Notes: a model not told the origin generated them from the sequence alone. Positions 20,913 through 58,588 are shown, counted from the stretch's first letter. The stretch: 64,000 nucleotides of DNA from Octopus sinensis (GCF_006345805.1 NC_043019.1:14383360-14447359); one strand, 5' to 3'. A program made the numbers and translations.

Positions 20913-22689
20913 GTTAGCAAGCCATTTACCACACAGCCACTCCTACGCCTATGGTAATTAGATTTTTTTTTTAATTTTCTTTTTCTTTTTCACATTTTAG
21001 AAATAGTTTTGGTAACCGATAATGGTGACAAATGTTCTATTTCTATAATTTCCTTAGCAATTTAACTGATTTGATTGATACCAACCCAGGTGAGAATGCC
21101 CTTCGCTCTATGATACAAACTCCTTATTTTAAAGGGATCTAAATTAAAGCCTTCCTTCAGAACTTTAGGTTTTTATGTTTCAAAAGCCAGTTTGAAAATG
21201 ACAGTTATTTTGGATATTGGATCTAACATGGATTAGATGATTTGACCAGAGTTGGCAAGCTGCACAAATTTCTAGTCTAATTTGGCATTGTTTCTACAGC
21301 TGGATGCCTTTCCTGATGCCAACCACTTTACAGTTTGTTGGGTGCTTTTACATGACACTGCACATGCACTTTTACGTGACACTGCATAGGCACTTCTATG
21401 AGGTTCCACATGAGTGCTTTACGTGGCACCACACAACCAATACACAAATATACATTTCAATATCAACACCCCACCATCTTCATCACTATAGTTTACGGTA
21501 ACAAAGCTCATTTCATTTCATTTCAGTCCACCTGTTTGTTTATATCTACTTTTTCTTGCTGTCGATGTATCTCTACTCTGACAAGACAAACGCTATCTAC
21601 TTCACTCTCTTTCACTTTCTCAGCGTAACTTTTTCCCTTGTCCATCTTACTCTACCTGACTTTCTTTAACCTCGTCACCAGAACATCACCCTCTGTTAAA
21701 TATTGTATCCTAAACATATCTCTTTCTCTTTACCTTTCCCTTCCCATTTTACTGCACATCATTAACACCTTCCTCTCAACACCCTTTTTCTCTCACTCTT
21801 CGCCTCTCCCTTCAACTAACCACTTGATGCCTTTATGTATTATTACGCTCCTCGTTTCTTTCTTCTCTGCTCATATTCTCCTTCCTCACTTTCTCTCTGT
21901 CACTTTTACTCTATCTGTAACTCACTCCACTTCTCTAACTAACTAAAGTATAACAGGTGAATGAACAAGCAGGTAATTATATAGATTTATTATTCTCTTC
22001 TCATATTTACAATTCAATTTCTTTGAATATATAAACTCTTAATTGCTCCTGTACAAAATATTGATTGATTGTTTCACCGATTGATTGATTGAGTGAGTGA
22101 GTGAGTGGGTGAGTGAGGGAGAGAGAGAGATAGACAACTAGACAGAGAGATGATCTTGGTTGAATGGAATTATGGATGGGTGGATGGACGGAGAAATGGA
22201 TGGATATATAGGCAGACATGCAGTCTCACAGACAGGTAGATAGATAAATAGAGAGAGAGAGAGAGAGTGACTAGCATGGAGAACATTTCCATCAGGACAT
22301 AAAATCAATGGAATAAAGGTATCAAGGCAAATGAGTCTTGTATACGATGGTGGACCCATACTAGAACTTGGTTCGTCATCTTCCTGAGGTTCATCATTCA
22401 GGAAAAGTATCCAAACAGATATTCATGGGAAATTAGGCATAAAACAATGATATAAGTTGCCTATAGAAATTTGAAGATTTTTAATAGTTCTTCAGTAAAA
22501 TTTCAAGAAAACATTCTGGTTTTGAAGGAAAATCAATTGCTATGTATGTTTGTATGTTATGCCTTATTCCTCATAAGCTGTTTTATTGAAAGACCAATGA
22601 AATTCTATGCATCCAGTATCTTAAGATCTTAACATGATGATAAGACATGGATGTCACTTTCAGATTCTGTCTGCCAAAAAAATTTTATT

Positions 22690-23859
22690 TCACAACCAAT
22701 TTTTTTGCCAGATGGCAGAAAATTTTTCTTTGCTGATTTGTGTTATATTTCCTTTTTTAAAATAAAACACTTTGTTGTCTTTTTGGCTCATCATCATAGC
22801 ATTTTCACCAAAACCACTTCGGCTTATTATCAACGTATCACATTCACTCAGAATATATTGGTCCAAAAACGCCTTCCTTACACCATCACACTGGTTTTTC
22901 ATCTCCTTACGTGGCCGATCCATATGCATTATTCCCCCTGATGTGTACACAATTTGAGGAGAAAATTTTTTAAAAGCTATCGCCTGTACCTCTTCTGAAT
23001 CTGTTGTCACAAATATTTTGTACTTGCTTGTGTTGTACTTATTTAACAAGTTCCAGATAATCTGAATACTTGACATTGAATTCCTTGGGGGATCTCCTGG
23101 AACACTAGGGTTCTGTCCCATTCGAATCTGAGCACAAACCAGATGTATATCTGGCTTGGGGATATTGACTTCAAAGAATTTGTCAAATTTTTCCTGTAAA
23201 TCATCGCTGAAGCGAAACAATAAATTCATCATTTTAGCAAATAAATTTCCATATGACATTTTTGATGCCCAATGCAGTTGTTCTTTGTAGCGAGGATTCC
23301 GTTTCAAGGCATGAAAATAGATTAGATTTGTTGTCACATAGAGGACATCTTCAGGGTAAAGCATTTCTAAGTCTGCTGATTGTAAAGAGGAAATGTACGT
23401 ATTGTTGTCAATCAAATAAAGGTGACGACTTCTTAGGCCATGCAACTCTTTTGGGTCAATTGTCCAGTTAATTTTGTTTGGTTGAAAATAATTAGTAAAA
23501 TTACAAAGTTTTGAAATAATGATGCCAAAACGATGACCCATGGCCTGTGCCATTAAATATACAGAAATTATTCCATGCTGCCTATCTGCCCAACCTCCAC
23601 ACACTGTATGACTAACACAGTAGAAAATAGTATATTTAGTTTTGTTGTTTAACTGAACCAATTCCTGTTTTTCTTTGCTTACAGTTTTCTTATTTATATG
23701 ATGCACTTGATTATTTGGAAATTCCTTAGAATTATTTATAAACTTTTGGTAGTGTTTGTTTAATGTTGTCACTGTATATTCTTTATTCGCAGAATATTGG
23801 TTCCAGGCAAACAGTAGAAAGAAGCTGCTGACCACAGCAATGAATCCAAGAACTTGAAT
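22690..23859 (-). CDS. Type II membrane fucosyltransferase-like protein (GT-B; GT11/GT23/POFUT superfamily), main coding exon; start exon not located
   Basis: Acceptor ttctag at 23860-23861, in-frame IQVLGFIAVVSSFFLLFAW anchor, CGGWADRQHG, motif I VCAQIRMG, motif II KIFVTTDS, motif III DQYILSECDTLIISRSGFG; AATAAA at 22582-22587. Confidence 0.8.
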   Translation of the reverse strand: MQVLGFIAVVSSFFLLFAWNQYSANKEYTVTTLNKHYQKFINNSKEFPNNQVHHINKKTVSKEKQELVQLNNKTKYTIFYCVSHTVCGGWADRQHGIISVYLMAQAMGHRFGIIISKLCNFTNYFQPNKINWTIDPKELHGLRSRHLYLIDNNTYISSLQSADLEMLYPEDVLYVTTNLIYFHALKRNPRYKEQLHWASKMSYGNLFAKMMNLLFRFSDDLQEKFDKFFEVNIPKPDIHLVCAQIRMGQNPSVPGDPPRNSMSSIQIIWNLLNKYNTSKYKIFVTTDSEEVQAIAFKKFSPQIVYTSGGIMHMDRPRKEMKNQCDGVRKAFLDQYILSECDTLIISRSGFGENAMMMSQKDNKVFYFKKGNITQISKEKFSAIWQKNWL

Positions 23860-24469
23860 CTAGAAATGATAAAAAGTATGTATACTAGCAGAGATACCCA
23901 GCATTGCTCAGGATTAAAATGGCATAGTTTTTTTATTGCTTTTCTTGTTTTTGTCATGTGACTGTGGTCATAGTGGAGCACCACCAATAATCAAAGAAAT
24001 CAACCCCAGGATTTATTCTTTGTAAGCCTAGTACTGTGTTTTGCCAAACGGCTAAGTTACGGGGACGTAAACACACCAACATTAGTTGTCAAGCAATGGA
24101 AAAGCTACACAGACACACACGCACGCACACACACACACACATCCACACACACACACACACGCACACACACACACACTCACACAAATATACACATATATAT
24201 GACGGTCTTCTTTCAGTTTCTGTGTACGAGATCCACTCACAAGGCTTTGGTGGTCCTCTGGTCAATGTCAGCTCCTCTGGCCCCTGTGCAGTGGCATGTA
24301 AAAAGTACCCACTACACTCTTGGAGTGGTTGGCGTTAGGAAGGGCATCCAGCTGTAGAAACATTGCCAGATCAGACTGGAGCCTGGTGCAGCCCCCTGGC
24401 TTCCCAGACCCCAGTCGAACTGTCCAGCGCATGCCAGCATGGTAAATGGACGTTAAACGATGATGATGA

Positions 24470-56820: not shown

Positions 56821-56944
56821 CTGTACCTATAAGCTAGTAAAAACTGAAAACTAAAAATTGCAGTAGAAGACTTTTTTTCTATTGTTTCTGGTATTTTATT
56901 ACAAAGTTGTCATATTTTCACTTATTTCTTTTCATCATTTCTAG

Positions 56945-58062
56945 ATTCGAGTTCTTGGATTCATTGCTGTGGTCAGCATCTTCTTTCTACTGTTTGCCTG
57001 GAAGCAATATTCTGTGAATAAAGAATATACAGGGACAACATTAAACAAACACAACCAAAAGTTTATAAATAATTCTAAGGAATTTCCAAATAATCAAGTG
57101 CATCATACAAATAACAAAACTGTAAGCAAAGAGAAACAGGAATTGGTTCAGTTAAACAACAAAACTAAATATATTATTTTTTACTGTGTTAATAATATAG
57201 AGTGTGGCGGTTGGGGAGATAGACAGCATGGAATAGTCTCTGTATATTTAATGGCACAGGCCATGGGTCGTCGTTTTGGTATCATTATTTCAAAACCTTG
57301 TAATTTTGCAAAATATCTTCAACCAAACAAAATTAACTGGACAATTGACCCAAAAGAGTTGCATGGCCTAAAAAGTCGTCACCTCCGTTTGACTCGAGAT
57401 AAAGGGTACATATCTGCTTTACGATCAGTAGACTTAGAAAGACGCCACCCTCAAAATGTCCTCTATGTGACAACAAATCAAATCTATTTTCACACCTTAA
57501 TAGAGAATCCTCGCTACAAAAAACAACTTCTTTGGTCATCACAAATGCCATATGGAAATGTATTTGCTAAAATAATGAATTTAATGTTTCGATTCAATGA
57601 TCATTTTCAAGAAGCGATTGACAAATTCTTTGAAGTCAATATCCCCAACCCAAATATGCATTTGGTGTGTGCTCAGATTCGAATTGGACGGAACCCCACA
57701 ATGCCACATGATGACTGAAGGATGTCAATGTCAAGTGTTCAATCTCTCTGGAACTTCTTAAGTAAATACAAAAACACCAGCAAGTACAAAATGTTTGTGA
57801 CAACAGACTCAGAAGAGGTACAGAAGATAGCTTTAAAAAAATTTTCTCCTCAAATCGTGGAAATGTGAAAAATAGGTGTGAAGGTTTAAGGAAGGTCATT
57901 ATGGACCAACATATTCTGACTAAATGTGATACGTTGATAATAAGCCGAAGTAATTTTGGTGAAAATGCTATGATGATGAGCCAAAAAGACAACAAAGTGT
58001 ATTATTTTAAAGAAGGAAATATAACAAGGATCGACAAAAAAAGATTTTTTCGTAACAGGTAA
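56945..58062 (+). pseudogene. Disrupted paralog of the fucosyltransferase-like gene
   Basis: Same acceptor/phase (ttctag|attcga); TGA at 57716-57718; 42-bp deletion at 57859/57860; 2-bp insertion near 57865; AATAAA at 58180-58185. Confidence 0.85.
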
Positions 58063-58588
58063 AATACTTGGTTGTGAGACAGGATTTTTTTGACACCCAG
58101 AATCTGAAAGTGACATCCATGTATCATCATCATGTCAAGATCTTAAGATACTGGATGCATAGAATTTCATTGGTCTTTCAATAAAACAGCTTATGAGGAA
58201 TAAGGTATAACATACAAACATACATAGCAATTGATTTTCCTTCAAAACCAGAATGTTTTCTTGAAATTCTACTGAAGAACTATTAAAAATCTTCAAATTT
58301 CTATAGGCAAATTATATCATTTACATATGCCCACGGGCATATAGTGTAGGGGTTTTGAGCATGAGCTATTAACCCCAAGATTCCAAGTTCAATTCTAGGC
58401 AGTGACCTGAGTAATAATAATAATAATAATAATGATATAATAATAATAATAATAATAATGATAATATAATAATGATAATAATAATAATAATAATGATACT
58501 AATAATAATAATAATGATAATAATAATAATGATGATGATAATAATAATAATAATAATAATAATAATAATAATAATATAATAATAATAA

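Follow-up and report, generated by a model that had tools for sequence, protein, structure and literature searches.

A head-to-head pair of fucosyltransferase-like sequences in Octopus sinensis with mosaic ancestry, uneven synonymous divergence and one disabled copy

Gene conversion from arm to arm is known in inverted duplicates and palindromes, for example in Drosophila and in the palindromes of sex chromosomes (reviewed in PMC3924832 and PMC3403216). Here we describe a related arrangement in Octopus sinensis, a head-to-head pair of fucosyltransferase-like sequences within a 64,000-nucleotide (nt) window of chromosome record CM016881.1 (approximately positions 14,383,360-14,447,359, same orientation); the window is the whole stretch of DNA that was analysed, and coordinates given without another record name refer to it. 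Sequence L003 agrees with window 44208-12690 at 100% identity. Like the described systems, the octopus pair is inverted, has patchy tracts of similarity and, over part of its arms, is more similar within than between species. It differs from them in that homogenisation appears partial and limited to the exon ends, in that the spacer in O. sinensis is about 33 kb long, and in that one arm has decayed and was not rescued by conversion.

The decayed arm, copy B, also resembles unprocessed (duplicated) pseudogenes, as it keeps the intron-exon junction and upstream intronic homology and is disrupted by a nonsense codon and a frameshifting deletion. It departs from them in that parts of it are still almost identical to the working paralog, copy A, which conversion, constraint on the 3' untranslated region (UTR) or both would account for. 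We consider it probable that an old inverted duplicate, conversion at its ends, decay of copy B and a weakly constrained segment explain the pattern of divergence without diversifying selection; the case is one of ordinary paralog evolution.

An intact and a disabled copy

Searches of the whole window with tblastn and blastn found two copies only, their 5' ends facing each other. Homology between them has sharp limits (copy A, 23876-22446 on the minus strand; copy B, 56928-58321 on the plus strand), and the acceptor, tttctag/ATTC, and the reading frame are identical in A and B, which bears out a preliminary description of this DNA. Copy A is the intact terminal coding exon of LOC118767645 and matches the corresponding 400-residue protein, P0001, at 100% identity; it encodes a transmembrane anchor, a stem and a GT-B fucosyltransferase-like catalytic domain. 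A six-frame search placed the first ten residues of P0001 at 34208..34179, followed by CCA/GTAAGT, and only the last ~17 nt of the intervening intron, comprising the polypyrimidine tract and the AG, are common to copy B.

Divergence between the two copies is distributed very unevenly. The counts that had been made by eye were reproduced exactly: 8 of 73 residues differ in the anchor and stem, 32 of 88 differ in the segment LRSRHLY..DKFF (64% amino acid identity; hereafter the variable segment), and there are six mismatches in the distal 3' UTR, the stretch concerned being 204 nt long (97.1% identity). Over the whole common 3' UTR, identity comes to 94.7%, since only 83.7% is reached in its first 43 nt. 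Within the exon, nucleotide identity is 95.9% in the stem, 91.2% in codons 74-141, 80.7% in the variable segment, 83.3-84.2% in codons 230-303 and 85.0% in codons 323-389. The number of differences per 200-nt window ranges from 5 (permutation p < 0.0002) to 42 (p = 0.003), and this patchiness is beyond chance. The better conservation of the UTR than of the coding core, to which the preliminary description had drawn attention, is thus real and would arise from homogenisation together with constraint on the UTR; the variable segment does lie within the N-terminal half of the catalytic domain, just upstream of motif I.

Synonymous divergence is uneven as well. Synonymous (dS) and nonsynonymous (dN) distances between A and B were estimated by the method of Nei and Gojobori, giving dS 0.024 and dN 0.047 in the stem, dS 0.299 and dN 0.206 in the variable segment (dN/dS, or omega, 0.69), dS 0.232 in codons 230-303, and dS 0.181 and dN 0.138 over the whole exon (omega 0.76). 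The dS of the variable segment is therefore about 12-fold above that of the stem and rises with dN; no dN/dS above 1 without a parallel rise in dS was found in this segment.

Copy B, which is orthologous to O. bimaculoides LOC128250609 by sequence markers and flanks, is a pseudogene, judged by disabling lesions that its intact relatives lack; the preliminary description had overlooked that its coding sequence is not intact. An in-frame TGA stands where the codon is CCA in A, CGG in the O. bimaculoides ortholog of B (ObimR, see below), and CGA both in a further O. sinensis copy, C, and in an unlinked paralog, D (LOC115229913), that serves as outgroup. Further downstream, a frameshifting 40-nt deletion takes out the conserved G-x-I-x-H-x-D motif, so that H323 (96% conserved in the family) and D325 (80%) are both missing. 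A protein derived from B was not found in a collection of 5.8 billion protein sequences, where O. sinensis is represented by A, by D and, as a partial model, by C. An origin of B as a retrocopy was rejected, because its acceptor and polypyrimidine tract are preserved and its upstream sequence shows intronic homology to both O. bimaculoides arms. The upstream arm of B is interrupted by a tandem array of seven 59-nt copies (56403-56820), which lies directly upstream of B and breaks its homology with O. bimaculoides. In the B homolog of the annotated 'exon 1' of ObimR, the GT donor is replaced by TT and an ATG is missing; this first-exon model of ObimR is itself doubtful.

Copy C (LOC118767632) is modelled only as a 194-residue fragment, P0166. 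It lies at CM016881.1 14617096-14617680 (L002 9695-10870), about 170 kb past the window and inverted relative to B, with which it is 97-99.5% identical, and is surrounded by a duplicated stretch of at least 11 kb, 95-98% identical, that runs colinear with window positions 42613-58411. It has neither the stop nor the deletion of B, and carries two 1-nt deletions of its own in short homopolymer runs, which could be long-read errors. Copy C would be explained by a recent segmental duplication or by misplacement of a haplotig.

Mosaic ancestry in two octopus species

The same head-to-head pair is found in O. bimaculoides (L001, CM046623.1), with both copies intact, and flanking homology identifies ObimL as the positional ortholog of A and ObimR as that of B. 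In O. bimaculoides the pair forms a compact palindrome with arms of 1.96 kb (90.4% identity, their inner parts 100% identical) and a spacer of 2.2 kb; in O. sinensis the exons are 33 kb apart and the spacer is full of repeats. ObimL lacks about 300 nt of the 3' UTR.

In a four-way alignment of A, B, ObimL and ObimR, informative sites were sorted by whether they group the sequences by species or by ortholog. In the stem, 11 sites group by species and none by ortholog; in codons 230-303, 4 group by species and 15 by ortholog, a significant difference from the stem (Fisher p = 5e-5). Larger changes are mixed in the same way: an 18-nt stem deletion is common to both O. bimaculoides copies, a 3-nt deletion is common to A and ObimL, and an earlier C-terminal stop is common to B, C and ObimR. 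Stem identity, 95.9% between A and B, is 100% between ObimL and ObimR (dS 0) and 93.0% across species, and identity in codons 230-303 is 91.0% between A and ObimL and 86.5% between B and ObimR. The grouping of the core by ortholog implies that the paralogs are older than the speciation of O. sinensis and O. bimaculoides, and the grouping of the stem by species, set against it, points to homogenisation of the ends by gene conversion. The variable segment of ObimL mixes A-type and B-type states, and ObimL and ObimR are 91% identical there, compared with 83% in the core.

Runs tests, for which our own Sawyer-type implementation was used rather than GENECONV, identified a 5' tract between ObimL and ObimR (21-site run, p = 0.0002) and a tract at 22811-22770 between A and B (9-site run, p = 0.024). 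Relative to the outgroup, the ratio d(A,B)/d(A,D) comes to about 0.18 in the distal UTR, and in both the core and the variable segment it is 1 or more. Patchy gene conversion, which the preliminary description had offered as one of two alternatives, is thus supported by the mosaic phylogeny, by the blocks of differing dS and by the runs tests.

Two other rearrangements were considered and set aside. That inner and outer arm parts had traded places through an inversion was suggested by a match of the far 3' flank of A to ObimR; this was rejected because ObimL carries the ~300-nt deletion, beyond which the O. bimaculoides flank (L001 5621-5847) matches window 22022-22260. Conversion of the variable segment of A from D was considered on account of the lower divergence between A and D (14%) than between A and B (19%); a sliding window gave no discrete tract, and the difference is marginal. 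The lower divergence from D fits better with ancestral states kept in A and acceleration on the B lineage.

The 3' UTR has a history of its own. That of A is 83% identical to that of D over 365 nt (window 22692-22315, minus strand, compared with L005 17320-17683) despite a coding dS between A and D of 0.36-0.41, which argues that the UTR is under its own constraint. The conserved UTR runs on to about 22290 in A only, not in B, and this extension (22445 to ~22290) aligns to ObimR at 87% and to D at 82%. From these alignments there looks to be a conserved element in the 3' UTR of this octopus gene family.

Conversion, selection, constraint or assembly error

The reading that we favour is as follows. 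The pair would be an old inverted duplicate of a gene for a type II membrane protein of GT-B fucosyltransferase-like type, predating the split of O. sinensis and O. bimaculoides. Repeated non-allelic gene conversion from one inverted arm to the other would have homogenised the 5' anchor and stem and the distal 3' UTR, and the middle of the exon would retain the old paralog divergence. The B-type copy of O. sinensis would later have been pseudogenised by the stop and the 40-nt deletion and so have gathered neutral changes, A being presumably the sole working copy at the locus. The most divergent segment coincides with that part of the catalytic domain where constraint is weakest, and the 3' UTR is under separate purifying constraint.

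The other alternative in the preliminary description was that diversifying selection on acceptor specificity drove change in the N-terminal subdomain, with the rest of the gene and the UTR staying alike. That the variable segment precedes motif I, within the N-terminal Rossmann-like half, would suit such selection, as would the generally high omega of the clade. That description had set out beforehand that a dS elevated along with dN would speak against selection, and this is the outcome in the variable segment, given its omega and its 12-fold excess of dS over the stem. When the 51 nucleotide differences in the segment were polarised with two outgroups, 30 proved to be derived on the B lineage (22 nonsynonymous, 8 synonymous), 9 on A (8 nonsynonymous, 1 synonymous), and 12 were ambiguous; the 22:8 ratio falls short of the neutral site ratio, roughly 4:1, and the B-type lineage has an increased distance to the outgroup in dS as well as in dN. 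The changes on that lineage include 10 nonsynonymous and 3 synonymous ones common to the intact ObimR, showing that the B-type excess began before speciation, which counts in favour of selection; 17 of the 30 are specific to B and C of O. sinensis, and both of these copies are broken. Across 72 non-octopod relatives, moreover, no block of the domain is less conserved than this segment (entropy 2.85 bits, compared with 2.08-2.37 elsewhere), only 1 of its 88 columns reaching 80% conservation. As an account of the contrast between A and B in the window, diversifying selection is largely refuted, and we regard it as very unlikely to be what shaped the pair.

Another history would do without conversion, a conserved stem and UTR surrounding a weakly constrained core, with decay of B added. 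The constraint on the UTR is clear from its 83% identity to D, family-wide conservation is lowest in the variable segment, B is a pseudogene, and cross-species divergence in the stem (7%) and the distal UTR (5-6%) is lower than in neutral flanks (~12-13%). Constraint cannot, however, give an 11:0 grouping by species and the 18-nt deletion in the stem next to a 15:4 grouping by ortholog in the core, and it leaves unexplained both the stem dS of 0.024 against 0.30 and the A-B distance relative to D, which climbs from about 0.18 at the ends to 1 or more in the middle. The stem is, in addition, the least conserved part across the wider family, being unalignable outside octopods, so that a history of this kind is quite unlikely. 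Misassembly is the most improbable of the explanations considered: B, C or both would be misassembled or uncollapsed haplotypes, their lesions errors, and the two paralogs intact. The lesions of C, 1-nt deletions in short homopolymers, are of the kind typical of long reads, and B and C lie on the same chromosome and are 95-98% identical over at least 11 kb. Those of B, a CGA-to-TGA substitution at a CpG and the 40-nt deletion, are atypical for long reads, however, and B and C differ by many substitutions and by indels of transposable-element size. The dS pattern and the mosaic phylogeny would hold even if B were intact.

Several observations weigh against the combination of old duplication, conversion and decay that we favour, or limit it. 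The comparison covers two species and five locus sequences, too few to fix where tracts begin and end or which copy was the donor, and the lesions of B are known from one long-read assembly. The stems of A and B are 95.9% rather than 100% identical, so conversion there was not very recent, and the runs test between A and B reaches only modest significance. With D as outgroup, the informative sites of the distal UTR are split 3:2:1, a split that does not demonstrate conversion after speciation there; the case for homogenisation of the distal UTR would rest on relative distances, with constraint probably contributing. Omega is high across the octopus clade (0.7-0.9 between close copies), and site-level positive selection would be compatible with so few sequences. 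Finally, copy A has changes at near-invariant positions, H120 (R in 97% of the 72 non-octopod family members) and L129 (P in 96%), which are seen in copy A alone, and L282 (F in 96% of the same members), which is common to its O. bimaculoides ortholog. In view of R120H and P129L, copy A may itself be altered in function or decaying.

Protein family, feature coordinates and surroundings

In metazoan FUT8, the core alpha-1,6-fucosyltransferase, an N-terminal coiled coil and a C-terminal SH3 domain flank the catalytic domain, and the motif I arginine of FUT8 and of NodZ contacts the phosphate of guanosine diphosphate (GDP). The profile match to these GT23 enzymes spans the donor-binding region: motif I, LVCAQIR, aligns with GVHVRR; motif II, IFVTTDS, aligns with VYLATDD; and motif III, DQYIL..CD.LI.SRS, aligns with LDIHFLSQADFLVCTFSS. 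R257 of P0001, within LVCAQIR, is nearly invariant in the family, aligns with HVRR of FUT8 and is present in both A and B. The predicted fold is likewise GT-B, and UniProt names the O. bimaculoides A-type ortholog 'GT23 domain-containing protein'. The differences from FUT8 are considerable, as identity is ~14%, the octopus protein falls below every Pfam threshold, and its 400 residues include neither an SH3 domain nor a FUT8-type coiled coil and end where the catalytic domain ends. The similarity is confined to FUT8 profile positions 206-348 and a weak N-terminal stretch; additional conserved cysteines and a CGGWGDRQ motif set the family apart.

Neither single-sequence searches with the protein of copy A and with close relatives nor a 7-sequence profile gave a sequence match in Pfam, NCBIfam or the PDB. 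An exhaustive profile search recovered ~1500 cluster representatives, the named relatives, from molluscs and one annelid, all being 'uncharacterized'. A 78-sequence family profile matched FUT8 (E = 2.6e-12, across motifs I-III), plant FUT4 (2.9e-9), NodZ (1.2e-6) and AtFUT1 (1.7e-5), and Pfam matches among the 78 members were to FUT8_N_cat (15), NodZ (13), XG_FTase (11), O-FucT (3) and GT11 (3). An AlphaFold2 model of P0001 built from a 21-sequence alignment had a mean predicted local distance difference test (pLDDT) score of 82.6, with most of the catalytic domain above 90; a run with 7 sequences gave a pLDDT of 37 and was unusable. The model consists of an N-terminal transmembrane helix, a disordered stem and a GT-B domain, and nothing else. 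The top 50 PDB matches found with Foldseek were all fucosyltransferases, namely AtFUT1, NodZ, FUT8, POFUT2 and POFUT1 (E 3e-13 to 5e-6, TM 0.41-0.54). The best of them was the plant xyloglucan fucosyltransferase AtFUT1 (E = 2.9e-13, TM 0.54), of the GT37 family to which plant FUT4 also belongs; identity to these enzymes is ~15%, the TM-scores are moderate, and, with a plant compared to an animal protein, there is no reason to expect a xyloglucan acceptor. The label 'fucosyltransferase-like' used in the preliminary description thus agrees with both family profile and predicted fold, and on these grounds the protein may be filed in the superfamily of inverting GT-B fucosyltransferases, which comprises GT23, GT37, GT11, GT65 and GT68, near GT23/GT37 and not as FUT8. 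Literature searches found no paper on this uncharacterised family in cephalopods.

Coordinates of the features of the paralog pair, with strand and basis of assignment (window positions unless L001 is named)
Feature	Coordinates	Strand	Basis
Gene A coding exon 1, MKKCPRTRFHP followed by GTAAGT donor	34176..34208	-	six-frame search
Gene A intron, ~10.3 kb, rich in SINE-like (short interspersed nuclear element-like) and tandem repeats	23860..34175	-	exon positions, homology limits
Gene A terminal coding exon, intact, 389 codons plus TGA (22690-22692), acceptor 23860/23859	22690..23859	-	translation, 100% match to P0001
Codons for P0001 residues 120 and 129	23530-23500	-	
Variable segment of A, LRSRHLY..DKFF, exon codons 142-229, P0001 residues 153-240	23173..23436	-	
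Gene A 3' UTR, part in common with B	22446..22689	-	alignment; distal 204 nt = 22649-22446
Upstream arm of B, with homology to both O. bimaculoides palindrome arms in their inner part	55592..56820	+	
Copy B, unprocessed pseudogene of the terminal exon, B-type paralog	56945..58074	+	frames, alignments
B counterpart of the variable segment	57368..57631	+	
In-frame TGA in copy B	57716..57718	+	open reading frame list ends at 57718
Junction of the frameshifting 40-nt deletion in copy B	57855..57857 (~57856)	+	alignments
B 3' UTR homolog, homology to A stopping at 58321	58075..58321	+	
Repeat insertion, SINE-like then (TAA)n, cutting off the UTR homology of B	58322..58588	+	sequence, tandem-repeat search
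O. bimaculoides palindrome arms	L001 5847-7773 and 10018-11971		

The repeat insertion 3' of B is common to copy C up to 58411; a tRNA origin of its SINE-like part was considered and dropped, ARAGORN finding nothing. Two related arrays of 184-186-nt units are present in the window, one of 8 copies inside the A-B spacer (35542-36995) and one of 4.7 copies near the window start (2578-3447). Elsewhere in the window, a C2H2 zinc-finger gene of 313 residues is annotated in the assembly at 14764-15705 (plus strand), and its 3' end consists of tandem 84-nt one-finger units (15319-15690) that are 97% alike, indicating that the finger duplications are very recent. A reverse-transcriptase open reading frame (61517-62917; Pfam RVT_1, E = 2e-29) lies within a retrotransposon remnant at 61135-63762 (minus strand), and transposable-element-like open reading frames with no Pfam match are found at 44991-46453 (plus strand) and 40231-40680 (minus strand), typical of the repeat-rich octopus background.

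A broader suggestion, which we consider unlikely, is that the proteins form an unstudied lophotrochozoan GT23/GT37-like clade (the ~1500 representatives, which no Pfam model covers and whose named members are all 'uncharacterized'), in which the octopod B-type may have gained a changed acceptor-side subdomain before the species split, intact in O. bimaculoides and lost in O. sinensis, with the conserved 3' UTR as perhaps a shared post-transcriptional control element.

Taken together, the result is mainly corrective, in that a seeming adaptive diversification of a glycosyltransferase would be the expected footprint of conversion, pseudogene decay and weak constraint. It also brings to attention a widespread mollusc and annelid fucosyltransferase-like family that lies outside Pfam and has no characterised member, and a 3' UTR whose conservation between unlinked octopus paralogs may be of interest for post-transcriptional regulation in cephalopods.

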